Of a DNA stretch of 64,000 nucleotides, positions 10,687-55,046 are shown in pieces. Each line of letters starts with the position of its first letter. Position 1 is the stretch's first letter. A program made the position numbers and the translations under genes. The notes under the pieces are model-generated. The model saw only the letters and a list, made by a program, of their open reading frames with translations. It searched no databases and had not been told where the DNA came from. Source of the DNA: Monocercomonoides exilis PA203 (Eukaryota > Protista > Preaxostyla); the NCBI GenBank assembly GCA_001643675.2, contig LSRY02000064.1, positions 310,001-374,000 on the forward strand, in the 5' to 3' direction.

Positions 10687-13600
10687 ATGGGCAATGAGCA
10701 AGGAAAGATTCACCCAGAAGATAATAACGAAGATACTATTCAAGGATCAACTTTGCAACAATCTCGCCCTGAACAAAATGGAAATCTTGACTCTGATAAC
10801 ATCCAACCAACAAATATAAGCGATGGGTCATTAGAAACAACAGAAATTAGATCTCAAGATGCTGTACCTTCTGTTAGCCAACAAAATTTATTTCTTCAAC
10901 AAAATTATCCCCCAAATCCGCAACTACAATCATTGCAATCACCTCCTTCTCAGGAAGGTTTTGGTCAAAAAGCTGTTTATGATACATATCAACAAACACC
11001 TCAAGCTTTTCCAATACCTTTTGTCAAATCAGATACTCAAAAATTTCCTTCCAATGGAACATCCAACGTTCAACCTCTTCAACAAGGAGGCTTTCCTTCT
11101 TCTGTTGTACAGAAAAATTCTTTTGATTTACTCGAATCAAATAAAGGTAATATTCTTACGAAAGAATCAGTTATATCTAGTTCAATAAATAAAAGTTCTT
11201 CCGTTCCTTCATTAGTAAAGTCAAAGAAATTAAAACCAATGCTCCGTCCTTCTCCTTCTTTTTTAGAACAAACAAAGTCTTATGTGTTATCTCAAGAACA
11301 AGCGTTATATTTGTCAACTACACCATTTACTATTAAATCACTAAATGAACCTGTTTTATGTACAGCACCATTTAGAATTACTACATCTTCAAAAAAGTGG
11401 TTGGTTCCAAGTCTTTCACTTTTTCATTATTTGCACAGCGAACGTGCAGCAGTTAGTGATGCTGTAGAATGGCTGTGTGAATGGAATAAAGTTCGTTCTG
11501 AAAATCATCCAGAAATCAAAAAGAAGCGAATGATGGAAAGAATGGCGCGCGATTTGCTAAGAGAGAAAGCAAAAGAGAAAAGAAGAAGGAAACAAGAGCG
11601 AAAAAGGCGCAGAGAGATGAAAAAGCGCCGAGCGATGGAGGCTTCCGCAGATGGAGCAAGCGAACTGGAATTGCAAGAAAAAGAATCAAAGGAAAAAGAA
11701 GAACTCGAGACAAGCGAGGAGACTAGTACCGATTGGAGCCTTGAATCAAGCACAGATCCGTTCGATGAAGATGACAAAGCTTTTGAATCAGCAGCAGAAG
11801 AACTGCCAGACGATGGGCGTATTGAGTGGGATGAGTGGTGCGACAAAGAAGAGGAAGTGCAAAGCCACAACTCCCCATCTTCAAGTGATGCGGTGAGCAC
11901 ACTAGAAAATGCCCCTTCGTCCCAGTTTCTGAAGTCAGTGGCTGAGCACAAGACGAAGCTGATTACGTCCATTCCACACTTTGCACATCAACTTCTCAGC
12001 GGCATTTGCTACATCCTGGCAAAGCTGTGGAAAATAGAAGAGGTTGGATCGATTGCAGAAATCGCATCAACGCGCGTACCGCCGCCTTCGCCCGATTCAG
12101 AAAAGCTTCTGCTGATGTTTTGCCTGCGCCTGTCTCCTCACACAATCTTTCTGGATCTTCACGGAAACGTCATCATCGACTGCGCTGCGATATTTCGCCC
12201 GGTGCTCGGGAGGCTGATGGAGATCAGCACGACGTTCCAGCCAAAGGCAAGCATTGTGCAAAAAAAGGTGATGGCGCAGGTAGCTATTGCACCGTCACAT
12301 CTCAGTCAGTCGGCTGCTGCTTCTGTTCAGAATGAATTTAAACCCCAAACTACAAGCGAGGTTTCGCTGTCTTCTTCTTCTTCTTCTTCTCAAAAAGTGG
12401 TGTCTACGTCTCCGCTTCGCAATTCGACCACATCTTCACAAGCAACACTTGAGAGTGCCAGAACCAAAGAGATCAACAAAGCGATTGTGTCTGATGTCAT
12501 GGAGCTTTCGCTCAGCAGCGGGGTTTCCAGGCATCCGGCGTTCGCATTCTGCACAGATGTGGATGTTGGATTCGAGGCATTCCGCTATTCTGCGCCAGAA
12601 ACGAAGCATCCGCGCTTTTCACCTTCGGACATCACTCACAGCTCAGGTGCGTATCTGTTTGGGGAAGAATTTGACAAGAAGAAATGGGTGAAAGAGAAAA
12701 GGAAGGAGCTGCGTGAAAAGCGGAAATTGAAAGAGATGAAAGAGAGGAAGAAAGCAGGGCAGCCAGTTGTTGATGAATCTGATGATGAATCAGATGAGAG
12801 CAGCGACTATACAAGGAAAGGGAAAGGGAGGAAGGAAAAGGACAAGAACGCCAAACGAACAGCATTTGATTTTGTGTTGGACGAGCAGATGGAGTTGGCT
12901 GCAAGTGCGCTGATGCGAAAAGAGACGGCGGAATACAAGCTGAAGCACAACACCGACGACTTCCACCAGTATGTCAAAGGGAAGGCTGCTTTTGGAGATA
13001 AAATGAAGAAACCTGCTCTGAATGGAAAAAACAGTTCAAGCCAGGATTCTGGCGACTCCAGCGACGACTCAGAAGAGGAGCAAGAAGGAGAAGTTTTCCT
13101 TGTTCCTCTGACTGACACTTCTGTCGCTTCCTCTTTGTCTTTCACGTTTGGTATGATTCTTTGGGAAACACTGACTCGGCAGGTGCCCTTCTTCAGTGCA
13201 TCGCCCACACAAGCAGCACAGCAGCTGATCAGAGGCAAGCAGCCACAACTTGAAGCAATACCGCCGTCGCCCACACAGGCAGTGTGGAAGCGCATTATCT
13301 CGCGTTGCTGCACAGTCGATGCGACAGAGCGAATGAAGCTGGAGGAGATTGAGAGAGAGATCATTCCGCTTCTGGCGAGCGGCGACGAGGCGAGGCGGGT
13401 GAAGCAGCAGAACGCTGCGATCAATCGTATGAAGGAGACAGTGAAAGAGGCTGCTGCTTCTCCTGTGATTAAGCAGTATGCTCGGTTTGCAGAGAACGTA
13501 GCAAAGGCACAAGTTTTGTACCAAAAAGAGCAAGAAAAAGAAATGGAAAGGGAAATGCTGATGAGAGAAATGGAAGAAGAAGAAGATGATGATGAAAAAG

Positions 13601-13935
13601 AAGACGAAGTTGGTAGAACAAATGATTTGGATCGGAGTTCATCAAAATCTGCGAACGAAATGAGGAGATCAACACCAAATAAGACAAAAGGATTAGAAAA
13701 AGATGCGTCGATGATCCAACAGGAAATCTCAACGCAAGAACAAAATCCGAAACTGGAGTCATCTTCATTTCGCAAAAGTGAAACATTGTCGTCTGCCCAG
13801 CAAAGCTTATTCTTTCCTTCAACTTCTTCCACGGCTTCTGCTAAGCCATCAACACCAACTCCCGTCAAAGCTGTGGACGTTCCTTTAGATTTTCTAAAAT
13901 CGCTTGGCGGCAAATACAAACTTGCGCAGACTTGA
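10687..13935 (+). CDS. Putative N-myristoylated cytoplasmic pseudokinase (C-lobe only, with low-complexity insertions), 1082 aa
   Basis: Starts MGNEQGK (Gly2, Lys7). Kinase C-lobe motifs appear in order: SLFHYLH, HQLLSGICYI (alphaE), CLRLSPHTIFLDLHGNV (degenerate HRDLxxxN), RYSAPE, FTFGMILWETLTRQVPF, RCCTVDATER. No GxGxxG, VAIK, HRD or DFG, and no TM segment. Confidence 0.7.
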   Translation: MGNEQGKIHPEDNNEDTIQGSTLQQSRPEQNGNLDSDNIQPTNISDGSLETTEIRSQDAVPSVSQQNLFLQQNYPPNPQLQSLQSPPSQEGFGQKAVYDTYQQTPQAFPIPFVKSDTQKFPSNGTSNVQPLQQGGFPSSVVQKNSFDLLESNKGNILTKESVISSSINKSSSVPSLVKSKKLKPMLRPSPSFLEQTKSYVLSQEQALYLSTTPFTIKSLNEPVLCTAPFRITTSSKKWLVPSLSLFHYLHSERAAVSDAVEWLCEWNKVRSENHPEIKKKRMMERMARDLLREKAKEKRRRKQERKRRREMKKRRAMEASADGASELELQEKESKEKEELETSEETSTDWSLESSTDPFDEDDKAFESAAEELPDDGRIEWDEWCDKEEEVQSHNSPSSSDAVSTLENAPSSQFLKSVAEHKTKLITSIPHFAHQLLSGICYILAKLWKIEEVGSIAEIASTRVPPPSPDSEKLLLMFCLRLSPHTIFLDLHGNVIIDCAAIFRPVLGRLMEISTTFQPKASIVQKKVMAQVAIAPSHLSQSAAASVQNEFKPQTTSEVSLSSSSSSSQKVVSTSPLRNSTTSSQATLESARTKEINKAIVSDVMELSLSSGVSRHPAFAFCTDVDVGFEAFRYSAPETKHPRFSPSDITHSSGAYLFGEEFDKKKWVKEKRKELREKRKLKEMKERKKAGQPVVDESDDESDESSDYTRKGKGRKEKDKNAKRTAFDFVLDEQMELAASALMRKETAEYKLKHNTDDFHQYVKGKAAFGDKMKKPALNGKNSSSQDSGDSSDDSEEEQEGEVFLVPLTDTSVASSLSFTFGMILWETLTRQVPFFSASPTQAAQQLIRGKQPQLEAIPPSPTQAVWKRIISRCCTVDATERMKLEEIEREIIPLLASGDEARRVKQQNAAINRMKETVKEAAASPVIKQYARFAENVAKAQVLYQKEQEKEMEREMLMREMEEEEDDDEKEDEVGRTNDLDRSSSKSANEMRRSTPNKTKGLEKDASMIQQEISTQEQNPKLESSSFRKSETLSSAQQSLFFPSTSSTASAKPSTPTPVKAVDVPLDFLKSLGGKYKLAQT

Positions 13936-14592: not shown

Positions 14593-17500
14593 TTATGTTG
14601 GCTTACGTCTGCGAGGACGCGAGGCAATGAGAGCAACAGCTGAAGACTGCCTCGCAAGAGGGGGCACAGGCTTCGGTGGCTCCACAGCAGCTGCACTTTT
14701 TGCTTCAGCTTTGTGATAAAACGAAGGTGCAATCACACTTGATGAGTTTGGTGATAGAGGGGGCAATTGAGTCGTGTATTCCTCTTCTGCAGGATTAAAA
14801 GAATGTGAAACAGAGGCTCGAGGAGACAATGCAAAACCTGGTGAAACTGGCTGCGGAGGAGGCTTTGCATAAACAGGCTGAATAACTGGCGTTGATAATT
14901 GAGATGAGCACTTGTACTCTCGCACAGGTGTTTTGGGAACTGGGGCAAAATCTCCAAATTCAGAAAGATCATCCAGCCGAGATTGCTTTTTCCTGGGCCG
15001 TTTTTGTGGCTGTTGACTTGAAGACTGAGCTTTATTCTTTTCAGCATTTTGTTTTTGCATTGACATTGGGTTGGTTCTTTTTCCTAATTTTTGTTCATCT
15101 TCTGTTGAAACATTACTATTATCTGTTTGTATTTGTTCTAAATTTCCATCATGTGAAACTTCCATTTGCTCGTTTGAAGTTTGAGGAATAACCAAAGGCG
15201 GGATTTGTTTTCCTCTTCCACGTACTGGAGGTCCCTGTTCAACGAGATTTGAAGCAGATATTGGGGCCTGAATAGGCTTTATTGGAGTTGCTTGGGAAGC
15301 AATGCTTGTACGAGGTGTAACAGGTGTGAAATGGCTTGTATCAGAAAAACGAAGAGCAGAGGCATTAGCCGGTGATGAAGTGGAAGAAGGAATCTGAGAT
15401 GAAAGTTGAGAGTTATATGGTGAGTCGATCATTGTTTGTCGAGAATCTTGTGGGTTGCATTGAGAGAGCGTTGATTGGGAGAGCTGAGATTGCTGTCCAA
15501 TGCGTCCAAAAACAGTTGGCATTGGGCTCTGTATTGTTGAAGAAGTTGACAATGAAGAAGCTTGAGGAGTTTGCAATGACTGCATTGGAGTTGAGGGATT
15601 TGACGTAACAATAGTTGAAAATGGTTGTGGGTATGGGGTTTGAGGTGATGGACAGGCAGAACCGATAACACTATCAGCTAGCATGGAAGCTGATATTGGT
15701 GATGAAAAAGTAGATTGCATCGGAGAAGAGAGAGCAGATGTTATTATCGAACTTGATCTACTATGACTACCGTTGTGGTGTGATATGTCTACAATATTTT
15801 GTTGATTGTTATCAACATCATTCATGAATTGGTCAAGAAATTGACTTATTTCCACTGGTTGTTCGGCTTTGGGTTTAATTTCAAAATGGGGAACATTTGG
15901 ACTCTGCTGAGGAGACTCCCGAGATGCTGGTTTAATATGTCGATTAGAAGGCCGACAAACCACAAGTGGAGATGTTTGTGGCGAAGAAAAAGTAGAAGAT
16001 TGGCGTATTCGCTCCATTTTTTGTGACAGAGGAGAATGGCTTGCTGAAGAGGATGAAGAGCTCATCGATGAACCACAAATAGGTGAAGAAATAAAATCAG
16101 TTCCTGTGGATTCCATTTTTGAAAATCCTCGCTTTCCATGAATTGGAGACTTTTTCAAAGAAGCTGGTGAAAGAGAATGCGATTTATTTGAACTTATGCT
16201 ATCGGCAAGACTCATGATTTTCTCATTTTCTGTTCCTAAAGGAATTGGTGTCATTTCAATATTCTTTTCTCCATTTCTCATGATAGATGGAGAAGCGGAA
16301 CTTCCAGAACTTGAAGATGGCGAATCTTCAAAGCTGTTGCTGCTCGCTGAAGAAGGATAAAGATCAGCTGATGAAGGTGATTCAGGGCCCAATGGTATAA
16401 TATGCACAGATGTCACATCATCGCCTTCATTTTCTCTGTCATTTATTGCAGCTTCCAGTTCTTCTTCTTCATCATCAACCAGTAGTGCCTGCTGCACGGC
16501 TGTTTTATCTTCTTCAGTCCAAGTTGCAATGCTCATGCTTTTCGTCTTACTATTTCGCTTTCTCATAACAATCACTACTACTACAAGTATTAATAATAGT
16601 ACGCACAACGCAATGAGATATGGAAGAATTGTTGATATGTTGAAAGGCTCTTTTGTTTCAGATAATTTCTCCATCTTATCTCTCACAATAAGATCGTTCG
16701 TTTTTTTCCATTCACCTTTATGATCCAAAAACAGAAGTCGACCTCTCCATTGCACTGACGAATCTCCAAGCTTTGATGTTTCAATTGTTGCAGTTGCATA
16801 ACTTTCATTAACGACATTCATTGATTCAAAAATTATATTGCTTATTTCACCGTTACTTGACTGTCCATTTGAACTTGCTTGAGATGTTGCATTTGCAGCA
16901 AGAAACAATTCAAAATGCATTGTACATGGCATCAGCATCGATCCAGTAAATGCAATGTCTGATTCTGCTCCATATGAAGTAAATTGGATGCTTTCCAATC
17001 TAGGTACAAATAATGGTGACGGAAAATCTTCAAGAATTCCCGTCAAAGTACAGTTTTTGCTATCAATCCAAAGTGATGGTAGTTCAGATGATGCAGCCTG
17101 CTTGTTTATCACAACGTTTTTCAAGCTTTCTACATTCAATCGTCCTTCATTTTCGCAATGAATATTTCGACGAGCTGATGGAAAGAGTGGAATCTCTGGA
17201 TTATTTCCTGTAAAGAAAATATCAGATAATTGAACATCTCCTCCAGAAATGGACAAAGCCCCTTGTGCAGAATATGATATTTCTGTACTCTTCAAAAGTG
17301 CAATACACTCCTTTAAATGGATTTGAGAAGATGACCATCCGCAAGGTACATCCATTTCTTCATTTGATAATGAAAGAGAATTCACTGGAAGCTGTTTTCC
17401 ATTAAAAGTGCAAAGATTGATAGAAATATCAAATAGAGTAAAAGAAGCGATCATTCCATATGAAACAGGCTGAAGAAGGGATCTGCAATCTTCAAATGAA

Positions 17501-20500
17501 CACTCTTCGAGAATAAATTGTGGCAGAAGGGTTTCTTCTTCATTTGATTGTTCAGACTTTTTACCCCCAACCAAATCAAATACACTTGATGACGATAATT
17601 TTGACATTGTTTGACAGGTAATAAATGAGCATTTTTTAAATGTAATTGACGACTGTGAATCAAAATTTGTATCAGAAGAGGCTGATGAAGCAATCTGAGA
17701 CATAACTGAAGGTCCTCTTCCATTTGCTCTTTCGATTGCAGAAAACTTTGTGTTTAATACTGTTATTGTAGTTATTTCGTTAGCCCGAAGATTTTGCTTT
17801 TGATCCGAAGAATTTGAACTAGTATCATTATTGCTCAAGTTTTGAGAGTTGCTTGAAACAATCTGTATCACTGGTGAATCAATTGATACTAGATTTTCAA
17901 AGGACGAATCATTCACTTTTATTGTTGTTCCAAGGGATAGTTGAATTATTCCAAATAGAGTCTCTGCTGATATGAAAGAAACACAAACAGATTGCATAGT
18001 CATTGCACCTTTCGAGGCAGATATTAGGGCGCACTTGATCGGAGAAGTTGCTTTAATGAATGAAAGATGGTTAAGTGTGAGTCTTTCACCTGATGATCCG
18101 ATAACTGAAGGCATTTGAGGTAATGAACTTGACGACTCCGATGAGAGGCTGAATTTAATGTATGCAATAAAGCAAACTCCTTCATTTGATATCAAAGGCT
18201 GTAACAAAGTTTTATTTGATGGAGCAGCAATTACAATAGACGCCGTATCAACAAATTCGTTACTCATAATTGAATCATCATAATTTTGCTCTTCATTTGA
18301 TGCACGTAAAGGCTCAGATAGTTGAGAAGGTTTGAACGTTATTCCAGTTGCATTAATCGATGTGGAAACAGAAACACTATTATTTATGGCGATCGTTGAA
18401 AATGAACCAGAAAGATGGGTAACACCAAATTCAAGTGTCTTGCAAGGTGACGCTGGCCTTCCGCACATGAACGAATCTCGGCGATTTTCAGTTTTCACGT
18501 ATACAATTTCATTGTGGTATTCTAAAAGAAACAAGAATAAGTCTGTGTTAGAGGGATATTCATTTTCATCAATTCCGTACAGAGAATTGTTTCTTTCGAA
18601 AGGAGAATCAAAAGAGAAGTTGAAAGCTGATTGATGAATAGTCGCTTCCAAATTAAATGAATGCACAAATACATCTCTTCCACAAAAGGCTGTGTTACCA
18701 GAAAAAATTGTGCCATGGAAGAGGTAATCACATGATGATTCGCTATTTAGTTGAAGGAAGATTGCTCCACCTCTTCCTTTTGTTGAAGGTGCTGAACAAT
18801 CAGACAAAGTCCCATTATTCAAATAAAAAGACCCAGAACCAGAAACAGTTGCATGAAGTGCACCTCCATCGCCGTCTTGTGTAGAAATTGTACTAAAATC
18901 AGATTCATTGACAATGACTGAGCATCCAGTATCAACACATAAATGAATTATTGCTCCATTGCCATTTGCGGAAGCAATTTGTGAAAATGTTGAAGAACGA
19001 ATTTCAACTTTGCTTGCATTGCTTGTTTCAATAAGATGTTTCGAAAGAGAAATGAATGATGATGATGAACACCTCATCATTTCGAGAGTGCAACCAGAAT
19101 TAACATGAATTAAATTTCCGCCAATTCGCAACGCCGAAAAACTGACCGCTGTGAAGGTAGAAGTGGACATATCATTCAATTTGAGTAGAAAATCATTTTC
19201 AGCAAAAGATATTTGCTCGAATGAAACATCTGAAAGAGTAAGAGTACCAATTCTAACGTCAAACAAAGAAGGTGATGTTGAAGACACTCCGACTTGCAAC
19301 GGAGAAAAATTCGAAGTCGTAAAAGATAAAAGTGCACCCCGAGAAACAAATAGAGAGGAAAGATAAGTTAGTGAAGATGGAAGTGTGAAATTTAAACGAG
19401 AAAATGCTAATGATCCATCATTTGTTATCAATCCATAAACATCTGCCTCAACATTCGTGCTATCTCGAAGGTGCAGAATAGCCTCCTTTGATTCTTCTTC
19501 ATTTCGACTCGAATATTGTGATAGTAATTGATTATTGTACGTGCTTATACTCATTGTTCCGGTTATATGAATTGTCTCACTAATAAACGATTCAGTAACA
19601 ACGGCAACATTTGTAAGCAATCGAGAAACAGCCTGGGTGAAGCCATGATGCAATGAGAAGCAAGGCACAGAAGCTGAGCCACATAAAGGTGCATCTCTTC
19701 CAGTGATTGAAGATGAGTAAATTGTTGTTCCAATCTTTGTGAAATAATCAATAACAGAACATGAAACATTAGTTACGCGATCAAATGACCATAGACGCTC
19801 CGAATTCTCCAGTGAAAAAGAATCAGTAAATCGAACTTCTTCAATATGCGATGCTAAATTAGGTCCATCTAAATACAAGTCTGCTCCAAATTCGGCGTTT
19901 CCCATTCTGAACGTTACAGACCTCAATGAATATGTGTAATTCGACTGTTCTCCCAAAAGTGATAAATAAATTGCTCCACCTTTCCCTTTAGTAGAATAAC
20001 AACTCGAAAATGTTATGTCGCTTAATGAAAAACTACCGTTATTTTCGACTGAAATATGTATACACCCTCCATTTGATTCTGTACTTCCACAAGATGTAAA
20101 TTCACATCCGCCATCAACGCTCAAATTACACGATTTTCCAATAATTGCCGAAAGCACACTTCCTTCTCCTTTGCTCTCAATTTGATTGAATGTTGAATGA
20201 GAATAAATTGTAATTGACGCAGCATAATCTGTCTTGATAAGCGAGCCATTTTCCATTTTGCATTCCTTAAATGATGATTCCAATACGGATAATTCACATT
20301 CGGGCCCAAGTGAAATGGCACTGGAAGTTTTTTTGAATGAAAGAGACGAAAGAGATGCTTGATTTATCGTTATGCTGGACTCTTCTACTAAGCTGATAAT
20401 GTTTCTGCTTTCTTCGACGTTCATCAAAGAAATAATCACTTTCTCTATATTCAGATTTCCTTTTGAAACAGAAATTAAACTAAATGGGCAAATATTCTGT

Positions 20501-23500
20501 GGAGAACTTGCACTGAAATCGCAAGAATTCAACGAAGCGTTTCCTCCGTCTATTGCAAGCAAGACTTTCCTTGTTGATATCTCCGGAACAGAAAACGACA
20601 ATTTCTCGAAAAATATTGAACTTTCTTTTTGAGGAGTTGTAAGAAGGCTAATTCCTGCAAGTGAAGAAATTATTACAGTTGAAAGTTGATTGTCAGAGGA
20701 TTTAACAGTAGTTGTTGTATCAGTTAAAATTGCCAACTCATCTAAATGACCGCTTCCTCGTAACAAAACTGTTCGGTGTTCATTTGTCAATCGATTGAAA
20801 GAATATGAAATCGATTTGCATGCAAGAAGAATGTGCCCACACATGATGTGGTTGTCTTCTTCGCTGTTCACATAGATCACATCTTGCGCCCGAAACAGAT
20901 AGTACAAAAGCGAACTGGACGAGTTCTCGCTTTCGCTCCGCAGCTCATCAACACCCCAGAGCGAGTTTCGCCCTGTTGCTATCGAGAAAGACCCGCTCCA
21001 TTTCGTTTCCTCAATCGTATCTTCAAATGACCCGCCTTTCACAAACACATCTGCTCCCAGCAAAGCCTTGTTGCCTAAAAACACCAAGTTCTTCAGTGAA
21101 TAATCCACATCCTTCTCGCTCTTGTCAAACTCCAGGTATATCCCTCCTCCGTTTCCTTCTCTTGCTTCACACTCTTCTAATGCGCATTCAATAACAGATA
21201 GTGATCCATTCCCAACTATTGTTGAAGAAATTGATCCACCATTCCCATGTTGATTTATGCACTTTGTAAATGTAACATTATCTTCAATGGTTACAGAATC
21301 AGAATTTCCAATAGAGCAGCAAATAGTAGCATTAAGGGTGCTGGAAATATTTGCAAACTTTGTAACTGTCTTTATTGTGATGTTTCTTGCTTTTTCTGAC
21401 CCAATAACGCAACTGTTGCTTAAAGTGATGTTCTTAAATGTTGATTCTATCACAGAAAGTGTTGTTCCCATAGAAAATACAATGACTCCCTTTGCAGAAG
21501 AAGAAGACACATTTTCGACAGTCAACTGAGCGCACTCCGCAATTGACGAACCAGTTGCATCAATAAAGGGACTATTTTGTCCAAGAGATATTGTTATTAA
21601 CGATGTTGATTTCAGTAACAATTTTCCTGCTCCAGAAAGCGTAATGATAGTTGCTGAAAATGGTAAGTCCAATGAATTTTGTTCAAAAATGCTTGATGTT
21701 ACTGATAACGTACCAGCATTTGAAGATATTATAGATGATACACTGGAAGTGGAAGGAAGAAGAAATTCTATTTCTGAGAATGCGATCGATTGTTCGTCTG
21801 AAGAACCCAAAACATAATTTGTAATACAACCTTTATCAGAAATGTTCAATCTTGCTGTGCTAGATAACCCTGATACAGCACAAGAAGCTCCATTTATAGC
21901 AGCAATATCTTGAAGTGATCCTTGATCTTGAATCTTTATTGTTTGTTTGGAAGGAAGCGAATGTTTCAGAGAATACTCTAGCGACTTGCATGGAAGTTGT
22001 AAATGACCGCATCTTATGTGATTTTCAAAAAGTGAACTCATGTAAATGACTTCAGAAGGCTTGTACAAATAATATAATAATGATGTCGAAGCATTCTGTT
22101 CTGGTGTGAGTGTTCTATCAATTCCCCACAAATTATCAATCTGATGAAGCGAATAAGACCCAATCCAGCTTGATTCAACAACTGTGCTATCAAAGTAGGC
22201 TCCGTCCAAATAAACATCGCTTCCAAGTGTTGCTTGATTATTTGAAAATGCTACTGATTGGAAAAGATAAGAAGCTATTCTTTCGCTTTGATCAAGTTGA
22301 AGAAATACACCTCCTCCAACTCCATTTAACGCTTTGCATTCAATTATTTGGCATCCAACCATATTTAAAATTCCTCCTTTATAAAGATTGAAGCTCAACG
22401 CGCCTCCATCCCCATCTGACGATGAACAATTTTGAAATGCAACAGATCCATTTATCATAACTTTGTTTTCATTTCCAATATTGCTTCTGATTGCACAGCT
22501 TCCCTTACTGCTAATAATATTGAAAAATGTAACAGGTGCCGAAATATTCAAATCGTTTGCCCGATCTGTACGGATGATTGAATTTTCATCCAAAATTATT
22601 TGGTCAAATGCTGTCTCCGTTATGCTCGTCGATGAGCTAATTCCACTTTCAATAAAAGATGCCGAGCCTGATAAATCAATTTGTGATACAATCAAATGAT
22701 CAAGCAAAATACTTGACGATCCTTTTGATAAAATGAAAGAATTCAGCAAAGTTAATCTTAGAGATTGAATCGATGAATAGTAAAACTCAAATGATCCACC
22801 AGTTATTAAAATCAACGAAAAATCTGTTGAAGCATCCACTTCATTCTGGATAATTGAACTCGAAGTGATGGATATAATTCCTCCATTGGATTCTATCATT
22901 GCTTTTGGTGTTTCATCAGTTGAAAGCATTTGATCGTATTTGTTTGAAAGTTGAGAGGAAGAAAATGTTGGTAAAATAAACTGAACAGAAGATATGTTCA
23001 CGAGTTGGCTGTCTCTTACTGTTGCAATATTTGTGATCTTTCCATTGTTAGTCACTGTTATCGTAGAACTATCAGACTCTGAAGTAATTGTCAGATTCCG
23101 TCCTGCAATTTCGGCAAAATCATTTATTAGTCCATTTTCTTTCACAATAATGGTTTGCCTTTGAACCGCCAATCGTGTCAAAGAAAATGGAATAGATTTG
23201 CATGGCAAAATGAAATGCCCACACATCGCATGATTCGTATCATTTGAAGAAGAATACACTTTGTCAGAAGGGCGGAATAAATAATAAAGCAATGAAGCGG
23301 ACGAATTATCGTCCTCTGTTATCGATAAATCGATTCCACAAAAAGCTTCGCGAGGAGTTAATAAAGAATATGAGCCTGTCCATCTAGAATCTACAATCAC
23401 TTCATCAAATGAACTTCCTTTAATATATACATCATTTCCAAAAACTCCTGTGTTAGTAGAAAATGTTAAGTAGTGAAGCGAATAGATCACTTCTGCTCCA

Positions 23501-42097: not shown

Positions 42098-42364
42098 GGG
42101 GGAAAATATTTCACTTCATGCATTTTCATAGAAATATTATGCACTTTTCATTGACTTTTTGAGATCAAAAAACACAATAAAAATAAGTTCGTTTTTGACA
42201 CTCGTTAAATATCACAATTCTTTATGTTTTGACTTCAATGACACCTATTTACGGATATGAAAATCAAATTTGTATTGAAATCTGAGAAAGTGAAATAAAG
42301 TTATGAGTTAAGCAATTTTTTTGTGCTTTGTGCAAAAAAAGCTTGAAAGTTCGTATTTTCCCCC
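42098..42364. mobile_element. MITE family C copy 3
   Basis: AT|GGGGGAAAATA...TATTTTCCCCC|AT, a perfect 11-bp TIR. The interior is homologous to 5077-5343 and 5462-5729. Confidence 0.8.
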
Positions 42365-42654
42365 ATATGATCAAAATATTATCAAAACTATTTCTTCAAA
42401 ATCATGTGAAATTTTTTTTTTTATTTTATCTTTTAAAGTCTAATGTTTACCAAGGGAAAAAATTATTTATTTTTCAATCAGACTATTTTATTCATACCTC
42501 AAAAGTCATCAAGTGCCTTAAGACTTTCAAACAAATCAACAATAAATCAAAAAAAAATCAAAAATCATTCGAAGACTTTTCCTCCTGAAATAAAAATTAT
42601 AATCAATAATCCAAATAAATACAAAAAGACTATTTCAAACAAGAAATAAATTAG

Positions 42655-45800: not shown

Positions 45801-45914
45801 TATTTTGAGATCATGTTTCTTTCAAAAAAAGAATCATGAATAGATCAAAAACTCCCATATGGACGAGAAAAAAGGATTCCTGAGGGAAAAGAAGACGTTT
45901 TATCCCTTTGCAGA

Positions 45915-48900
45915 ATGGGCCCACATCCACAAAAAATATTGACGTTTGTCCTTTTGATTTCTTCGATTGTGAGTTGCAGTGCAGCGGGTGATCAGGAGCA
46001 GTTTGTGGGATACAAACATGAAAAAGCAGAAACAAGAGCAGAAAAAGGAAAAGTGAGGAGATCCAAGAACCAGCCATGTTTGCTCAGAAATGAAATTGTG
46101 AGTGATTGGCACACAAAATATAAGGAAGGAGGAGAGGAGAAGAAGAAGATGCACTCGAGCGTTTCTGAATGGATTAATGGATTTGGCAACAGCAAAGAGG
46201 CAAAAGGACAGAGCCAAAGAAATGAAAAGCAAAAAGAAGGAAATTCGCAACAAAGTGGAAATTTATATTCACTTTGCACAATAGGTTGTTTTCAGAGCCA
46301 TTTTCTTCTTCTGAATTCCACACTTCTTCTGTTGTCTATTCAGCTGAATTCTCCAGGAGAAGAGGCAATGGTCTCAATTGGAGGAAAATCAGTTTTATTT
46401 TTTGAAGACTGCGAGATACGTTATGAGGACGAGTCAAAGAGATCTCCGATCGAACTGCACACTGGCTCAGCAAGCTTTGTGAACATATCGCTTATTATTG
46501 AAGGGCAAACGCCACTCTTCCATTCTCTTGCCTTTTCACCAAACGATATTTCTGTTGGCAGGACCAGAGCTGTGTCAATGATCCACTCAACATTTTCATC
46601 TGTGTTGCTTTCACCAACCCCATTTTTGTGCAACGGGCCTTTATCGAGCATCTCGCTATTCAAGTGCACTTTCTCAAACATCACCAAAGCTACACCAGCA
46701 AAATCATCAAGAGGATCTGAGAATGATTGTTTCACAAAAATTGATAGCTGCTCATTTGTTTCCGTGGAGGATGCGATTTATGGGGGAGTTGTGGATTCGA
46801 TGTATTGCCCTCTGTCTTCGCTTCTTTCTGTGAATAATTCATATATCAGGTGCAATCGTCTGAGATTCACAGAAAACGAAGGAAGGAGGCAGATGGGAAG
46901 GCAAGTGCTCGGAAATGGGACACACACATTTGAGAGCTGCGAGTGGAGTGGATGCAATGCCACAAACGGAGCAGCAATATATTTGTATGATCAGCCTCAA
47001 GCATCTCTGAACATTTCGAATTGTATTTTCGACAAATGCACAGGAAACGAATCATTCGGTGGAGCTATTTCTACATGCAATATCTTAGGTTTAGTAATTG
47101 TGAAAAGCAATTTCACAGAATGCAAAATAGAAAAAGAAGGGGGAGGTGCAATTTATGCTGTTGTTGTGTCAACATTTTCGAGATTATTTTCTTTGCATTT
47201 CTTGAAATGCATTTGTGAAGGACATGGAGCAGGATTCTTTTTTGACAAGTTCAACATCAGTAGGGGAAATGATACAACCTCTGGAGCAATAGTGGAATGC
47301 ACTTTTGACAGTAATGATGCAGGAAGAGGGTGGGGTGGAGCCTTTCGAATTGATTATTCACCAAAAGGTTTCTCTGTAAGATCCTGCAATTATTTGAGAT
47401 GTGTTGGAGGAAAGGCTGGAGGAGCAATAACAATGGAACAACTTGAGTTTCATGATCAGAATCCAAGTTTGATATGGTTCTGTATGCTTCATGAATGCTT
47501 CACAAGAGATGCTGAACTTGATGATTATAAGGGTCATGATGCTTATTTTTTTGATCCTTTATCCAAACGACTTTTTCAGACACCATTTGTTGAGTCATAC
47601 ACAACAAATTTAAAACAGTATCGAGTCACTTACAACAATAATAGCTGGAATTATCCTGATGAATGGATACCAATTGGGATTCATATCAACCCATGCTTCA
47701 TTGGAGTCACAGGCAATGATAATGAAGATCTTTGTGGATTAGAGGAAAGTCTGCCATGTAAGACACTTTTTCACTCAGTTGAGAAAAGCAACAGACAATG
47801 TTCATACGGAATTGTATTATTGGAAGGGAATCACATTTCTGAAAGAGAAAGTCTAAACATTAGGGAAAAAGAGATATTGCTCAGGGGAACAAGCAGAAAT
47901 CGCACTGTTCTTCACTCTTCTGGAATTGCATCTCCGGATTCTTTGCTGTTTTCTGTGTCAACAGGCTCACTTTTGTTGGAGTCATTCACCATCCTGCACA
48001 ACCATCAGTCGCCATCGATGCGAATACTGGTGATGATCTCGTCAGAGGGGGAGTGTGGGTTGGATGATATGTGTGTGTATTCTCCTGAGTCGCAAACTCA
48101 AGTCGAGTTTGAGTGCTCGATGTTTGAGGTTGATCTGGGGCGTTTCTGGGTGAGAAACAGCCGGATTGAGAGATTCAAACTGTCTTCGGTGCTAATTGCT
48201 GATACGCTGCGCTCAGCATCAACAATGGTGCTATTTGGGAATGTGACATTTGGTTGGATTGAGAGGGTATCAGGAGGAGGGAGTGTTGTGAACATGAAGA
48301 TTGGTGATGGGGAAGGGGTTCGTGTGGAGAATGTGAGTGTGAATAACTGTTCGAGCGTGGGAGGAGATGGAGGTGGGATGAGGATAGAGATAGGAGATGG
48401 AGGATGGATGAGGCTTGGGGAAGAGAGGAGTGGAACAGAGATTTGTGGGTGTCTGGCAGAGGATGGGAGAGGCGGGGGGATAGCAGTGGTGATGGAGAAT
48501 GCATTCTCATCGATGGTGCTGGAGAATGTTGTGTTCAGAGAGAACAGAGCCGTTTCAGGGAGAAATGTGTTTGTGATATCCCCGGATCTGGGGGTGAGTG
48601 TGTCGAGGGAATCATTCAAGTTCTTTTCAGGAGAAGCGCCATTTGGGGCAGAAGATGCAGCTGGGGTGGAAGTGGAGGCTCCTTTGGTGGTAATTCCGCT
48701 GGTATATTATCTGATGGAGAGGGAGGGGAATGTGAGTGTTGGAAGTGGTGGTGTGGATGTGGATGTGTGTGGGTTTGGAGCGTATCCATGCCGGACAGTG
48801 GGATATGGGGTGAGGCATCGGCAGCAAGAAGGAGGAGTGAGGCAGGTTGTGGTGCTTTCACCGTTCAAGCTGGAGGAGAGCATTGTAATGGGAGAGGATG

Positions 48901-51900
48901 CAGGGTGCATTGTCGGCGGGGTGGAGGAGAAAACTGTTGTGGAGGTTGTTGGAGATGGGAGAGGGAGGGGAGGAGTGATTGAGCTGAGGCGAATAGCGAT
49001 TGTGAAGGAGATGAAGTTTGCAGTGGGAGGAGAGCTCCAGGGAAATGAAAGGTGTGTGGTGTACGTGAACAGCATCGGAGCGAATGTTTCTGTTCAAGAT
49101 TGCATGTTTGTTGGGAAAGAGGTGGGGAATGAGATTGGATATCGGATAATGTGTTTGGAGAATGGGGAATGTTCAATCACTCGAGTGAGCGTTGAGGATG
49201 TGAGGTTCAGTGGGGTGGAAATTGTGGAGTGTTTTGGGGGGCAATCTGTTTTGAGCATTGTGAATATGAAAACGAGGAATGTTGGAGGAGCTTTTGGAAA
49301 GGGGCTGATCTCAGGAGAAAGGATGCTGGGGGTGGAGATGAACAGCTCAGATTTTGTGTGTGGGGATGAATGCTTTGGAGGGATGGTGAGCGTGGTGCAT
49401 GTGAAGAGAGCAGAAATGAAGAACTGCACAGGAGTTGGGATTGGGAAGGGAGAAGGGGATGGGGCAGTGGTGAGAGGAGTTGTATCCAATGGGGAAGTGC
49501 TGATGATTGAGGGAGGTGAGATGAGCGGAGAGTGTGGAAGAGGGAATGGAGGAGGTGTTGGAGCTGTTTTGGAGGATGGAGGGAGGATGGAGTTGGGGAT
49601 GGATTGGGGAGTTCGGATGAGGAACTGCAAAGCGCTTGGAAGAGAAGAAGGGAAAGGGTTTGGTGGAGGTGTGTATATTGATGTGAGAGAAGGGGCAAGT
49701 TGGTTTGTGTTGAAAGGGATTGAGTTTGAGGGATGTGTTGCAGAAGCATCAGGAGGAGAAGTGTTTGTGAAGGCAATGGAGCTGAAGGGTGTTATTACAA
49801 GGGATTCAGTGGGATTAGCAGTCGAAATGATAGGGGAGACGAAGTGGACTGGTGTGGAGGAGGCCGACAGCATGTTGTTCATTCCTCTGTGCATCTATCT
49901 CCTCCCCACCCCAGAAGAAATATATGTGAGCAACGTCGAGGCATCCAATCACTCACATTGTGGAATAGTCGAGTTTCCTTGTTTGACAATGAAGCACTCC
50001 CTCACAAGACAAACAGGAGAAAAGAAAATTGTTGTGAATGGAATGATATTGATGAGTGATGAATTGGCATTTGCTGGACAGAAACATGAAATCAGAGGAA
50101 ATGATGATCAGAGTGGTTGGACAGTTTCTGATACAACCACAGAAACAAACACAGCAATGGTGACAGTTGGAGTGGAAACAGTGCTTTCAGCACTTATCTT
50201 CTCTCTTCCATCTTCTCTTCCTCTTCACCAGACTTTCGTTTCATCTTCGTCACATTTGACTCTGTCTCATTGCTCTATATCTCTTCAAGATCCTTCGTCT
50301 GAATTGGCATGTCTATTCTTATCTGTTGATTCTGGTTCGTTGGTTATTGATTTCTTCTCTGCTTCGTCAATCACCTTGAGCACAACTCCATTGATTTCAT
50401 TGTCTGGAAGCGGAACAAATGCGGAGTTAATGATCACCACGTGGTTGAACATGACGAACTGCACTTTCACAGAAATCGAAAGAGCAGCTGGAAGTGGAGG
50501 GTGTGTGAGCATTGGCAACAGCCATGATGATAATGCAAACACACAAATAAATATTGAAGAGTGTGTTTTTGATGGATGCTCTGTGCTGGATGATGGAAGC
50601 AGAGGAGGGGCTATCGATGTGCAGATGAAAGGAAACATTCAAATGAATATTATTTCATGCACATTCACAGGATGTTCAGCACCAGCTGGAGAAGAAGGGA
50701 AAAGTGGGTTTGGCGGAGGAATGGCGCTGAAGTTGATTGATGGCGATTCTTCATTTGTGATTTCATCTCCTGTTTTTGATACAGACAAGCCAAATGCTGC
50801 GAGATATGGAAATAATCTGTTTGTTGAATCATCCAACTTGACAAAGAGCATCACAAATGACTCGCTCCCATTTGTGTCTGAGCATCTGGCTGATATTTCG
50901 TTGGATTCATTGAGCGGCTTTGATGGAAGTGATAAAACGAATGCCATCCCGCTGGTCTATTTCTGGCGAAGATTTGGCTCAGAGATCGTTGTTGGGGGTG
51001 ATGGAAAAGATGTGTGCATTTGTGGACTTTCAGATTATCCTTGCCTGTCAATCGACCATTCATTCACGAGATTGCCTGAAGGAAACGAAAGGAATATCAA
51101 GATCAATGGAAAAGGAATTCTTCAAAAGAGTGTTGATATCAGTGGGGTGACGATAAAATCGGAAGATAACGATGTGTGCTCACTGGAGTGTCTCTCATCG
51201 CTTGAAGGATCAGAAGGAGCAGCAATGAAGATTTGTGGAATAACCAATTTTGAATTGATCAAGTTTGTGATTCCTTCTTCATTCATGAGTGGAGTGAATT
51301 ATTTGATGCATGTTGAATCAAGCGAGGGATTGTTGACTGTGAAGGACTGCTCATTCACAAAAAATGAAGAAAATGATGTGGAAGAGATTATGAATTATGG
51401 GCTGATCAAAGCAGATGGAGGGACAGTGGTGTTGGAATTGGTGTCAATTCAATCACTCGGCTTTTCACATGATGTTGTTTCTGTGTTATCAACAACGATT
51501 TTGAACATTTATAATCTAACGATGAAGAGCATTGAGCTGGAAGGAGCAAGCGGATTGAAAATATCAAAGAGTTCAAGAAGAGAGAAAAATGAAGAGGAAC
51601 AAGATGTTCTCATTGAATGGAGTTCATTCGAAGAAGTCACTCAGAACACAACAGATGATATTCCCATCATTCGAAATGACAATGATGTTGAGCCTTTGAA
51701 AATAGTGATGCGAAACACAACGATGAAGAAGTGTGGAGGAACGAGGTGTGGAAAGGGAGGAGGGATGTTTTGCATGTTGAATGAGGGAGGAAGCTTTGTT
51801 TGCTCGTTTTGCACGATTTCTGAGTGTTTCTGCTCCACCACAGGAAGAGGTGGGTGGCTGTTTCTGGAGTGTTCCTCAGTGGCTGAGCATCCTCTGAGCT

Positions 51901-54900
51901 TTGTGCTGTCGAATCTCACCTTCAAAGACAACACTGCATTGAGAGGGAGAGATGCGTATGTTCGATGCCACTCAATCGAAACACAGATAGTTGATGAGCA
52001 GTTCTTGCTGGATTTCAGAGCACCTTTTGTGAAGGAGCTGGCGATGTGGGGCTGTTCAACAGACTCGTTTGAGGGGGAAGAGGATCTTCTTCTAAGGGTT
52101 GTGAAATACCAGAGCGAGACGATATTTGTGTCGGCTTGTGCAGAGAATCACTCTGATTTCAATTCCTGTGGAGAATTGCATGGGCCGTGTGAGTCATTGA
52201 ATGTGGGAGTGAAGCACATCATCCCGTCGTCGTACTCGCAGCTGTTGATATCAAAGGAAACAGCGATGAGAGGGAAATGCAGCATTCACAATGTTGTTGT
52301 CCATCCTCTGGAATCTCCTCCAGCTGCTTTGGTGCATCTGAGCTTTGCAATTGTTAATGATGCAGGAGGTGTTATCACAACATCAGGGAAAGTTCGGGTT
52401 GAGAGTGTGAAATTCGACTTTGGCCAGTCGTTTTCATTTTCAGGCAGTTCTGTTGTTCATGAAACAAGTGGCCAACTTTCCCTTTCATTTGTTGATTTTT
52501 CATCAGTTGGAGGGTCAAACAGCATTCAACCTGTTGTTCTCAACTCATCGTTGCTGAGCATTGAAAGTGGAATTGTTCATGTTGACAACTGCTCAGTGTC
52601 ACTCCTTTCATTCAAGAAGCCTTCATTTCTGTTGAGTGGAGATGAGATTTCGTTGACGAATGTGAAACTGGAAGAGATTGAATCAACAGCAGATGTGTTT
52701 GAGATTGGCAGTTGTGGAATAATGTCCATTAATGGAGTATCTGCAGATGGAGTGAAGCTGTCAGATGGTTGCATCCTTGCAATTGGCAGTTCATCTTCAG
52801 GAACAATATCTGTTGGAAGCTCGTCATTCGACAACTGCTCAAGGAATTCAGAAGGAGCATCTGTTCTTTCGGCTTCTTCAACCTCTGCTCATTTTGAATT
52901 TTCAAACTGTTCCTGCACAAAATGTTATTCTCTGTCTGACAAAGGAAGGGTCATGGAAGTGATCAACATGAAAGATGCTTATTTGAATATGTGTGAGTTT
53001 GAAGGTTTGTTAACGAGCAAAGCGTTATTGGAGCATGAAAATGACATGAAAGAAATATGTGAATGGAATGGATCGGTTGTCCATTCAACGAATTCAACGA
53101 TGGTGATGAAATACACAACTATTTCAAATGCTTCATCAGGTGGATTTTCGGTGTCGGCTGGCGATGTGACAATCGAGAAAGGAGAGTTTTTGAACAACAA
53201 TCCTTTCATCGAAAAATACCCTTCTCTTCGTCGAAACATCATCTGTTCAGATTCTGCCTCACTGACCATTTCGAGCTTGAAAGGTGGAGATGGACTGATG
53301 CCCAATTCTTCGTTTTGGATTTTGAATGATGGATGCACACTTGGAGGAATAGCAGGAGAAAGACCATCGTCTTTCTTCATTCCCAGACTGGAAGAGGTTT
53401 CTGTGAATGAAAGTGGAAGCAAGATTTTTATCCAATTCAAGGGATCTCTTTTTGTGCCATGTGACTTGTCTTTCAGACTTGTGTATAAAACAGGGGATGT
53501 GGAGTTGGTTGAGACATATCGTTTTGAGGAAGACAGTTTTGTATCAGAAAATGAAGTGATTGGAAGAGTTCCATCAGAAAATATTTCATTGGCTTCAGAT
53601 GAAACAGAGGTGTCAGTGACGATTCTGTTTGGAAAGCAATCGGCAGAGACATTTCCGCTGATTCTGAAAAACAGAAGTGAACCCAAAGGAAATGGAGATG
53701 AAAGGATTGTTGAAGGAAGAAAAGAGGGGAAATCGATATGGCCTATTATTGTGATTATCCTTGTTGTGATATTATTGATTGTTCTCATCGGATTTATTTT
53801 GTTTGCTATCCGATGGAAGAAGGCAAAGAACGAGAACAAAGATTTGAGAGAGATTGTGAATGAAACAGTGAAGAAGGATCCAAAAGCATTTGAGATGGTG
53901 ACGATGGAGATGTCACCAGAGGAGCAGTGGAGGAGAGCAGAGAGGGAAGCTGAAAAGAAGAACGAAGAGAGGATGAAGAAGAGGGTGTACGAGAAAAGCT
54001 TGGGACACTCCGAGTCATCGGAGCATTTGTTGAGTGAGAGTGGATCGACTGAATACATCCTTGGAAGAGATTCAGACAAGATTCCAGAATGGATGTTGGA
54101 AAAGGTTGAAGAAGAGGAAATTAGAAAGCAGGCTCCATCACCATCCATTTCATCCACCTCAACCACAGACACTTCAGACACAGATTCAACATTTGTTCGT
54201 GGAGAGGATCTATGCCCAACCACCTCATCAATGTCAAATCTGGTGGATGCAATGGCATGTTCTTCGCCTCATGAGAAGCTGATTGTGGATCTTCGAGACT
54301 CGTTGTTCATGTTGCTTCATGGAAAGAATAAGACAAAGGAGATGGCAATTGGCACGCTTCAGGAGAGAGAATATACAGCTGTCCAAATCCTGTTCTGGGT
54401 GGCGAATGGAGCTCTCCACTCGTTTGATGAATGTGAGGTTCCACTTCAGTCGCTGACAAATCTGAGTCCACACATTGTGTTGTTCTCAGAACACATGGTC
54501 ATTTGTGTTGCAATGCATTCTGATTGTTCTTCTTCAGATTCAGACTCATCCTCGATATCTTCATCTACTGTTGTGACATCTACCAGTGATGATGGTGATG
54601 AAAGAGATTCTCTGCCCTCATCAGCTTTTGAGGATGAGGATGCCTTCAGAAAGGAGTGCCTGAGATGGAAGGCACCTGAATTGCTGAATGGCACAAAGAA
54701 GCGTGCGACGAAGAAGACAGTTGTGTTCTCGATTGGGATGATGTTGTGGGAGTGCCTGACACTCAAAGTTCCATTTGGGGAGTATGAGGCAGAGGTGGCA
54801 GGGCAGAAGATAGTAAATGGGGAAAGGCCGTGTGGAGGGGAGAGTGAGGCAAGTGGGATGCATGAGATGGTGAAGGGATGCTGGAGGGCAGAACGAGGGG

Positions 54901-55046
54901 AAAGGGTGACGTTGATGTGGGTGAAGCGGGAATTGTTTGGGCATTTCCCAGGAGAAGCAGCGGCGATGACGATGACGGATGCAATTTTATATGAGGAGAG
55001 CAAAGACAACATCTCGAGCTGCGAGAGTCTTGTGGAATATTTTTAA
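45915..55046 (+). CDS. Receptor-like pseudokinase: signal peptide, beta-helix modules, TM, C-lobe-only TKL-like domain (3043 aa)
   Basis: Signal-like KILTFVLLISSIVSCSA. Five CG...PC module starts plus GGAI/FxxN motifs. The juxtamembrane block NNP..PSLRRNIIC...SFWI...CTL...FIPRLE is shared with the 6373-aa protein. TM IWPIIVIILVVILLIVLIGFILFAI|RWKK (~53735-53810). Tail motifs: SLFMLLH, LTNLSPHIVLF, RWKAPE, VFSIGMMLWECLT..VPF, GCW....ER. Confidence 0.85.
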   Translation: MGPHPQKILTFVLLISSIVSCSAAGDQEQFVGYKHEKAETRAEKGKVRRSKNQPCLLRNEIVSDWHTKYKEGGEEKKKMHSSVSEWINGFGNSKEAKGQSQRNEKQKEGNSQQSGNLYSLCTIGCFQSHFLLLNSTLLLLSIQLNSPGEEAMVSIGGKSVLFFEDCEIRYEDESKRSPIELHTGSASFVNISLIIEGQTPLFHSLAFSPNDISVGRTRAVSMIHSTFSSVLLSPTPFLCNGPLSSISLFKCTFSNITKATPAKSSRGSENDCFTKIDSCSFVSVEDAIYGGVVDSMYCPLSSLLSVNNSYIRCNRLRFTENEGRRQMGRQVLGNGTHTFESCEWSGCNATNGAAIYLYDQPQASLNISNCIFDKCTGNESFGGAISTCNILGLVIVKSNFTECKIEKEGGGAIYAVVVSTFSRLFSLHFLKCICEGHGAGFFFDKFNISRGNDTTSGAIVECTFDSNDAGRGWGGAFRIDYSPKGFSVRSCNYLRCVGGKAGGAITMEQLEFHDQNPSLIWFCMLHECFTRDAELDDYKGHDAYFFDPLSKRLFQTPFVESYTTNLKQYRVTYNNNSWNYPDEWIPIGIHINPCFIGVTGNDNEDLCGLEESLPCKTLFHSVEKSNRQCSYGIVLLEGNHISERESLNIREKEILLRGTSRNRTVLHSSGIASPDSLLFSVSTGSLLLESFTILHNHQSPSMRILVMISSEGECGLDDMCVYSPESQTQVEFECSMFEVDLGRFWVRNSRIERFKLSSVLIADTLRSASTMVLFGNVTFGWIERVSGGGSVVNMKIGDGEGVRVENVSVNNCSSVGGDGGGMRIEIGDGGWMRLGEERSGTEICGCLAEDGRGGGIAVVMENAFSSMVLENVVFRENRAVSGRNVFVISPDLGVSVSRESFKFFSGEAPFGAEDAAGVEVEAPLVVIPLVYYLMEREGNVSVGSGGVDVDVCGFGAYPCRTVGYGVRHRQQEGGVRQVVVLSPFKLEESIVMGEDAGCIVGGVEEKTVVEVVGDGRGRGGVIELRRIAIVKEMKFAVGGELQGNERCVVYVNSIGANVSVQDCMFVGKEVGNEIGYRIMCLENGECSITRVSVEDVRFSGVEIVECFGGQSVLSIVNMKTRNVGGAFGKGLISGERMLGVEMNSSDFVCGDECFGGMVSVVHVKRAEMKNCTGVGIGKGEGDGAVVRGVVSNGEVLMIEGGEMSGECGRGNGGGVGAVLEDGGRMELGMDWGVRMRNCKALGREEGKGFGGGVYIDVREGASWFVLKGIEFEGCVAEASGGEVFVKAMELKGVITRDSVGLAVEMIGETKWTGVEEADSMLFIPLCIYLLPTPEEIYVSNVEASNHSHCGIVEFPCLTMKHSLTRQTGEKKIVVNGMILMSDELAFAGQKHEIRGNDDQSGWTVSDTTTETNTAMVTVGVETVLSALIFSLPSSLPLHQTFVSSSSHLTLSHCSISLQDPSSELACLFLSVDSGSLVIDFFSASSITLSTTPLISLSGSGTNAELMITTWLNMTNCTFTEIERAAGSGGCVSIGNSHDDNANTQINIEECVFDGCSVLDDGSRGGAIDVQMKGNIQMNIISCTFTGCSAPAGEEGKSGFGGGMALKLIDGDSSFVISSPVFDTDKPNAARYGNNLFVESSNLTKSITNDSLPFVSEHLADISLDSLSGFDGSDKTNAIPLVYFWRRFGSEIVVGGDGKDVCICGLSDYPCLSIDHSFTRLPEGNERNIKINGKGILQKSVDISGVTIKSEDNDVCSLECLSSLEGSEGAAMKICGITNFELIKFVIPSSFMSGVNYLMHVESSEGLLTVKDCSFTKNEENDVEEIMNYGLIKADGGTVVLELVSIQSLGFSHDVVSVLSTTILNIYNLTMKSIELEGASGLKISKSSRREKNEEEQDVLIEWSSFEEVTQNTTDDIPIIRNDNDVEPLKIVMRNTTMKKCGGTRCGKGGGMFCMLNEGGSFVCSFCTISECFCSTTGRGGWLFLECSSVAEHPLSFVLSNLTFKDNTALRGRDAYVRCHSIETQIVDEQFLLDFRAPFVKELAMWGCSTDSFEGEEDLLLRVVKYQSETIFVSACAENHSDFNSCGELHGPCESLNVGVKHIIPSSYSQLLISKETAMRGKCSIHNVVVHPLESPPAALVHLSFAIVNDAGGVITTSGKVRVESVKFDFGQSFSFSGSSVVHETSGQLSLSFVDFSSVGGSNSIQPVVLNSSLLSIESGIVHVDNCSVSLLSFKKPSFLLSGDEISLTNVKLEEIESTADVFEIGSCGIMSINGVSADGVKLSDGCILAIGSSSSGTISVGSSSFDNCSRNSEGASVLSASSTSAHFEFSNCSCTKCYSLSDKGRVMEVINMKDAYLNMCEFEGLLTSKALLEHENDMKEICEWNGSVVHSTNSTMVMKYTTISNASSGGFSVSAGDVTIEKGEFLNNNPFIEKYPSLRRNIICSDSASLTISSLKGGDGLMPNSSFWILNDGCTLGGIAGERPSSFFIPRLEEVSVNESGSKIFIQFKGSLFVPCDLSFRLVYKTGDVELVETYRFEEDSFVSENEVIGRVPSENISLASDETEVSVTILFGKQSAETFPLILKNRSEPKGNGDERIVEGRKEGKSIWPIIVIILVVILLIVLIGFILFAIRWKKAKNENKDLREIVNETVKKDPKAFEMVTMEMSPEEQWRRAEREAEKKNEERMKKRVYEKSLGHSESSEHLLSESGSTEYILGRDSDKIPEWMLEKVEEEEIRKQAPSPSISSTSTTDTSDTDSTFVRGEDLCPTTSSMSNLVDAMACSSPHEKLIVDLRDSLFMLLHGKNKTKEMAIGTLQEREYTAVQILFWVANGALHSFDECEVPLQSLTNLSPHIVLFSEHMVICVAMHSDCSSSDSDSSSISSSTVVTSTSDDGDERDSLPSSAFEDEDAFRKECLRWKAPELLNGTKKRATKKTVVFSIGMMLWECLTLKVPFGEYEAEVAGQKIVNGERPCGGESEASGMHEMVKGCWRAERGERVTLMWVKRELFGHFPGEAAAMTMTDAILYEESKDNISSCESLVEYF

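Follow-up and report, generated by a model that had tools for sequence, protein, structure and literature searches.

Does a giant surface receptor that carries no kinase domain draw on a membrane-anchored pseudokinase encoded beside it? The question is raised by a 64-kb stretch of the genome of the oxymonad Monocercomonoides exilis (contig C63:310001-374000 of an 82.3 Mb assembly in 101 contigs; hereafter the window), in which an earlier note, working from the letters alone, had picked out three genes with overlapping parts and had interpreted them as one plant-like receptor system. All three open reading frames, here called A, G and R, are present where that note had placed them:

10687-13935, forward strand: gene A, a 1082-aa pseudokinase without an ectodomain; three A-type loci, this one included, were detected genome-wide.
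14593-33784, reverse strand: gene G, a 6373-aa kinase-less giant with a signal peptide, ~12 beta-helix-type modules, a juxtamembrane domain, a transmembrane (TM) helix and a disordered tail.
45915-55046, forward strand: gene R, a 3043-aa typical receptor pseudokinase with a signal peptide, modules, a TM helix and a kinase-like tail.

We find that these genes belong to one oxymonad superfamily, derived from a tyrosine kinase-like (TKL) kinase, that occurs in three architectures: the R-type (~1,200 members), the G-type, and the A-type, comprising A and two copies of a gene designated MONOS_6830. Our analysis establishes these architectures and the kinship between them, as well as how many copies each has and that their catalytic motifs are gone; how the proteins act is a matter of probability, and is weighed further below.

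Gene R, whose 90% cluster representative is MONOS_5693, provides the reference for the family. Two of its features are needed here:

53739-53810, forward strand: TM helix of R, residues 2609-2632, hydropathy 3.91.
54228-54950, forward strand: dead kinase domain of R, folded from beta4-beta5 through the C-lobe, with an AlphaFold pLDDT (predicted local distance difference test) of 82.

The GxGxxG, VAIK, HRD and DFG motifs are all absent from R, and APE alone remains in A and R. The confident AlphaFold model that gave this pLDDT of 82 covers residues 2765-3020 of R and was built with Blattamonas rows added. It shows a hairpin of two strands and the whole of a kinase C-lobe, its closest structures being CTR1 (Z 18.6), ILK (Z 18.1) and TAK1 (Z 17.3); the whole tail, modeled with near-identical rows, reached a pLDDT of 43. 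Since the first of these models begins at residue 2765, it cannot itself prove that beta1-alphaC is lost, and that loss is instead argued by the missing motifs together with the low-confidence, strand-free prediction upstream of this residue. Tails of this kind number 1,230-1,235 candidates in the 82.3 Mb genome, or ~1 per 67 kb, and the best 150 of these candidates are at least 74% identical. At this density a 64-kb window contains such a tail with P ~0.6. The presence of R in the window is therefore expected by chance, and we rejected R as part of a local gene module; the proposal that the three genes constitute one system is not supported. The same combination of receptor and dead kinase occurs in at least 74 proteins of Blattamonas. 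R is an ordinary member of a ~1,200-copy family of beta-helix receptors bearing a dead, TKL-derived kinase tail.

In the passages of the published accounts that were available to us, M. exilis is credited with 332 'protein tyrosine kinase' genes, 320 of them TKL (PMC6759080), in contrast to the ~1,200 loci counted here, and the 'tyrosine kinase' family is described as overlapping unclassified repeats (PMC8767320). Those same passages mention neither dead kinases nor beta-helix ectodomains, and members lacking an ectodomain or a kinase likewise go unmentioned in them. R is a typical member of this published family, while A is kin to it by its kinase remnant and G by its ectodomain. Literature searches on oxymonad receptor kinases, N-lobe-less receptor pseudokinases and WH2 pseudokinases returned nothing relevant. 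Elsewhere in the genome we found about a dozen near-complete TKL-type domains, which are the candidates for any phosphorylation. Such domains occur in a 6,905-codon frame (C52:244 kb, +) and a 5,951-codon frame (C23:936 kb, +), possible giant proteins with an active kinase. A Joint Genome Institute (JGI) metagenome fragment (L061:183-908, +; protein P0028), whose catalytic loop is divergent, falls among the M. exilis tails, placing the family in an environmental relative.

Is A a relative of these receptors? A is single-copy, its sequence, like that of R, exactly matches a public protein model, and its dead kinase is interrupted by long charged inserts:

10687-10707, forward strand: MGNEQGK, a candidate N-myristoylation site (Gly2, Asn3, Lys7).
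11326-11439, forward strand: beta4-beta5-hinge-alphaD block of A, residues 214-251, conserved in MONOS_6830.
11515-11637, forward strand: strongly basic stretch of A, residues 277-317, in the alphaD-alphaE insert.
11959-12195, forward strand: alphaE and degenerate catalytic loop of A, with HRDLK replaced, LSPH, and no DFG.
12562-13377, forward strand: APE segment of A, a charged insert, then C-lobe alphaF-alphaI.
13867-13932, forward strand: C-terminal motif of A, AVDVPL.FL, common to MONOS_6830 and weakly WH2-like.

The protein starts with MGNEQGK and has no ectodomain, as the earlier note had observed; we found no membrane helix (best 19-residue hydropathy 1.41), no GGAI modules and, in a Pfam scan, no C-terminal TPR domain of the BSK type. 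A four-codon upstream open reading frame (10683-10697, +) begins 4 nt before the ATG of A and overlaps it out of frame, and an IS1595/Merlin-type transposase gene (8827-9891, +) lies ~800 nt 5' of the A start.

The motif matches between A and R that had been taken as derived signatures do exist, although only part of them is informative. The kinase remnant of A has an LSPH-type catalytic loop and lacks both DFG and the alphaF Asp; its only family-specific features are the catalytic-loop LSPH, which is the Blattamonas consensus too, the loss of the alphaF Asp and an Arg before the APE segment. SLFxxLH, APE and GMxLWE..VPF recur in TKLs generally, fly and amoeba kinases included, and were rejected as derived signatures on that ground. 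Likewise, most of the top matches of A among 1.8 billion representatives were generic TKLs over the alphaF-alphaI stretch, and most of the supposed signatures are therefore generic; profile matches of A in the PDB were ZAK, TAK1, ILK and CTR1. The M. exilis tail HMM (hidden Markov model), used alone, also detected only alphaF-alphaI of A (E=7e-18). These matches speak for an alternative in which the A-type proteins are functionally unrelated to the receptors, either as independently decayed TKLs or as cytosolic or nuclear kin in which the initial MG is incidental. The long basic stretches of A, which could be nuclear signals, point the same way, residues 277-317 being a candidate for either a nuclear signal or a second membrane signal. 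We nevertheless consider such a lack of relation unlikely, given that profile and tree tests favour kinship with the receptors and that MONOS_6830 has a clear membrane anchor.

With respect to the profiles, the core of A scored 80.7 bits on a joint oxymonad receptor-tail HMM versus 54.6 on generic TKLs, and its N-terminal half scored 16.1 bits on the oxymonad profile versus -0.8 on generic TKLs. In trees, A and MONOS_6830 joined the M. exilis and Blattamonas tails with support of 99/99 under LG+G4 and 100/99 under a mixture model, in a position outside the sampled expansions of both organisms. The approximately unbiased (AU) test rejected two placements of A among TKLs (p=0.04 and p=0.01); it did not separate A as sister to all receptors from A as sister to the M. 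exilis branch (p=0.45). Judged from these sequence comparisons, A is kin of the receptor pseudokinases and not itself a receptor. The earlier note had named a position outside the receptor pseudokinase clade as grounds for abandoning its proposal; profiles, trees and AU tests all put A inside.

MONOS_6830 (1259 aa) was the sole match, among the 1.8 billion representatives, to the A-specific blocks along its length. Its blocks correspond to those of A one for one and in unchanged order, down to the short C-terminal motif, at 38-39% identity. A word search with A retrieved A alone and missed MONOS_6830, and was hence insensitive here; a HMMER search of the representatives at E<0.001 gave no orthologue of A from any organism but M. 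exilis, though divergent ones may escape that threshold. Three separate profiles returned the same three loci, namely A and the two copies of MONOS_6830. These copies are near-identical and convergent, lying ~42 kb apart at 486 kb (+) and 534 kb (-) of contig C19, and represent either an inverted duplication or an assembly fold-back.

The N-terminus of MONOS_6830 consists of a TM helix (residues 4-30), CCC and a basic run, again without an ectodomain. What is new here is thus the recognition of MONOS_6830 as the only detected paralogue of A, with a TM helix and three Cys in place of the myristoylation-like start. That so small a branch should carry two different N-terminal anchors suggests that membrane position matters, and it is this pair of anchors that most strongly supports taking MGNEQGK for a myristoylation site. 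The genome encodes an N-myristoyltransferase (NMT), and Lys7 is a known NMT contact (PMC7048800); a membrane anchor for A is plausible. The sequences favour A and MONOS_6830 as a small branch of putative membrane-tethered scaffolds. The last 25 residues of MONOS_6830 gave WH2 as their sole Pfam match (E=0.06, 13.5 bits against a cut-off of 23.1), and the WH2-like C-terminus is, at this weak level of similarity, a lead and not a finding.

Gene G is the third architecture. Its membrane-proximal parts are as follows:

16666-17448, reverse strand: juxtamembrane ectodomain of G, family HMM E=2e-14, best paralogue 31% identical.
16561-16629, reverse strand: TM helix of G, hydropathy 3.49.
14596-16560, reverse strand: cytoplasmic tail of G, ~650 aa, Ser/Pro/Gln-rich and disordered.

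As the earlier note had recognized, G and R have CG..PC and GGAI modules in common (BLASTP 21-25% identity, E down to 7e-52) together with the juxtamembrane domain, and G has no kinase. Nine CG..PC and 27 GGAI-type motifs fall into ~12 clusters along the protein, and for one module the nearest Atlas clusters were a Preaxostyla cluster (0.97) followed by DUF1565, Chlam_PMP and Beta_helix proteins. The juxtamembrane domain of G branches between the M. exilis and Blattamonas expansions, and a search with it for other giants returned G itself and one Blattamonas receptor only. The nearest paralogues of G are very long open frames that have modules in common with it, one of 5,904 codons on contig C11 (~370-376 kb, -) and one of 16,665 codons on contig C36 (~150-176 kb, +); further very long frames lie on C23 (~377 kb, 7,757 codons) and C35 (~819 kb, 6,510 codons). 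With modules, juxtamembrane domain and one TM helix present and the pseudokinase tail absent, G is a single-copy, divergent, kinase-less member of the oxymonad superfamily. Two otherwise diverged G modules hold a 407-bp direct repeat (20770-21176 and 24316-24722, 99.75% identical) that looks like recent gene conversion.

The tail of G (20% Ser, 11% Pro) had no kinase or Pfam match and no second copy in the genome. Just past the TM helix, a stretch of 20 residues (16492-16551, -) is similar to the linker between alphaD and alphaE in the family pseudokinase, with 11/19 identities, a level at which 0/300 shuffles reached 10; against a profile built without R the match was weak (E=0.11) and was equaled by 1/1000 shuffles. 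One possibility is that a lost kinase left this stretch behind.

The sequence of G as used here was translated by script from a 97-nt first exon starting at 33784 and a 6350-codon frame (33645-14593, -), giving 6373 aa; the intervening 70-nt GT-AG intron (33687-33618) is also in the public model. That model, MONOS_5695 (7885 aa), extends further, joining G through a second predicted intron (34018-33757) to an OSCA/TMEM63-like gene immediately upstream (33961-39020, -), where we obtained weak Pfam matches to RSN1_TM and RSN1_7TM. Were it correct, G would be the extension of a mechanosensitive channel, a reading to which we give hardly any credence: the channel frame ends at its own stop (33961) and is followed by an AT-rich gap, while G possesses its own ATG and a signal peptide that the predicted splice would delete. 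We rejected MONOS_5695 as a single gene, and the fusion is probably an annotation artefact. The interval between G and R contains the OSCA-like gene and a housekeeping gene recognized by sequence as eIF5A (39598-39966, -). Beyond R are two further housekeeping genes, a legumain-type peptidase C13 (56432-57985, -) and STT3 (58582-60633, +). The intervals 3896-4140, 5082-5736, 6082-6953 and 42091-42366 hold several imperfect palindromes and an inverted repeat element common to the 5-kb and 42-kb regions.

Does A then serve G? The earlier note had proposed that A supplies the signaling domain that G lacks. In its fullest form, this would be a dedicated pair in which myristoylated A binds the tail of G and provides the missing pseudokinase docking domain, in analogy with a plant receptor-like protein (RLP) and a receptor-like cytoplasmic kinase (RLCK). 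A and G lie tail-to-tail, with stop codons 657 nt apart, are single-copy and complementary, and neither branches within the expansions sampled from M. exilis and Blattamonas; moreover, the prior chance of their adjacency is low. Any member left out of the copying by which tails are homogenized would, however, be expected to branch deep, and convergent genes have no common promoter. The adjacency has been observed once, in an A-type set of three loci in total, and the contigs bearing the nearest giant paralogues of G (C11 and C36) contain no A-type gene by any of the three profiles. G also carries a 650-aa tail of its own, and the pair has no catalytic member: every kinase-like domain concerned is dead, so that A cannot supply catalysis. 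We judge a dedicated A-G pair to be unsupported and, as an explanation, rather improbable. A historical account of the adjacency is that an inversion split an ancient receptor-pseudokinase gene into an ectodomain half (G) and a kinase half (A). Such an inversion would yield the tail-to-tail geometry, and the two halves branch equally deep. Yet the tail of G has no similarity to A or MONOS_6830, the 38-39% identity of the two ectodomain-less A-type proteins implies that ectodomain loss is old, and the alphaD-alphaE linker, which A still holds, may have left a trace in G as well. We therefore regard such a fission as highly improbable.

On balance, we lean towards a reading in which the A-type proteins are membrane-tethered scaffolds, G senses through its own tail, the adjacency of A and G is incidental and chance accounts for R in the window. 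The A-type proteins would be held at the membrane by their N-termini, through myristate in A and through a helix and palmitoylated cysteines in MONOS_6830, and their kinase C-lobe would offer a docking surface for partners, perhaps those of the receptor tails. Their common C-terminal motif may bind a further partner, possibly actin. G would be an adhesin or sensor whose long tail recruits partners through linear motifs and phosphosites, and A and G would be neighbours without dedicated pairing.

Several points weigh against this preference. The prior for a chance A-G adjacency is ~0.2-3% if kinase-less receptors number 10-150, a figure that precedes correction for the post-hoc choice among 1,344 windows. 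MGNEQGK lacks Ser/Thr at position 6 and has no nearby Cys or basic second signal, and the myristoylation site of A accordingly remains a prediction. The WH2 match of MONOS_6830 is below the Pfam cut-off, A has no WH2 match in Pfam, and a PDB search with the C-terminal motif yielded none. The core blocks of A used for the profile scores were chosen by eye with the inserts left out, dead kinases can attract one another on trees by long-branch pull, and the outgroup of the tree was without the organism's own active TKLs.

A bolder proposal, which we consider speculative and improbable, is a receptor system with no catalysis anywhere in it, in which the three A-type proteins serve as common adaptors tethered to the membrane. 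They would dock on the ~1,200 receptor tails as well as on those of kinase-less giants like G, and would reach actin through the WH2-like end. If true, this proposal would amount to a convergent layout resembling that of plant receptor-like kinases (RLKs), RLPs and RLCKs, without phosphotransfer. M. exilis was the first eukaryote known to be without mitochondria, and its largest gene family has been filed only as 'tyrosine kinases'. Dead tails that are near-identical and number ~1,200 are hard to study singly. With the same dead domain, two different anchors and a common C-terminal motif, the three-gene branch would make a manageable set of baits in a search for that domain's partner; a link of the branch to actin, if there is one, would connect the family with attachment in the gut or the capture of bacteria there.

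In plants, RLKs, RLPs and RLCKs (BSKs and the pseudokinases ZED1 and RKS1 among them) likewise form one superfamily with three architectures (PMC12170986, PMC10868138). Their ectodomain-less members are anchored by myristate, palmitate and sometimes a TM helix, and the anchors predicted for A and MONOS_6830 would be of the same kinds. The comparison drawn in the earlier note thus stands for domain layout and fails for mechanism, since plant systems rest on active kinases such as BAK1, SOBIR1 and BRI1, plant RLPs depending on active RLKs and BSKs being substrates of BRI1 (PMC10868138, PMC12170986), whereas the domains described here are all dead. Plants have ~150 RLCKs per genome, compared to three A-type loci here, and A lacks the TPR domain of BSKs. 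We have no evidence that A belongs to plant RLK/Pelle, the tree of A having held no identified RLK/Pelle sequence. Plant RLPs have short cytoplasmic tails; G resembles them in combining an ectodomain and a TM helix without a kinase and differs in its 650-aa tail. ILK, the second-best structural match of the R tail, also has a dead TKL-type domain and scaffolds adhesion receptors to actin via its C-lobe. In contrast to the A-type proteins, it keeps its N-lobe, binds ATP, has ankyrin repeats and is without a lipid or helix anchor, and its match to R reflects the general TKL fold. The EhTMKB1 family of Entamoeba is likewise an expanded receptor-kinase family of a gut protist, with some members lacking the ectodomain or the kinase, although its ectodomains are Cys-rich and its kinases active (PMC2880585). 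Truncated copies in that family match full ones at 95% identity or more (PMC2880585), unlike A and G, both of them ancient and divergent.

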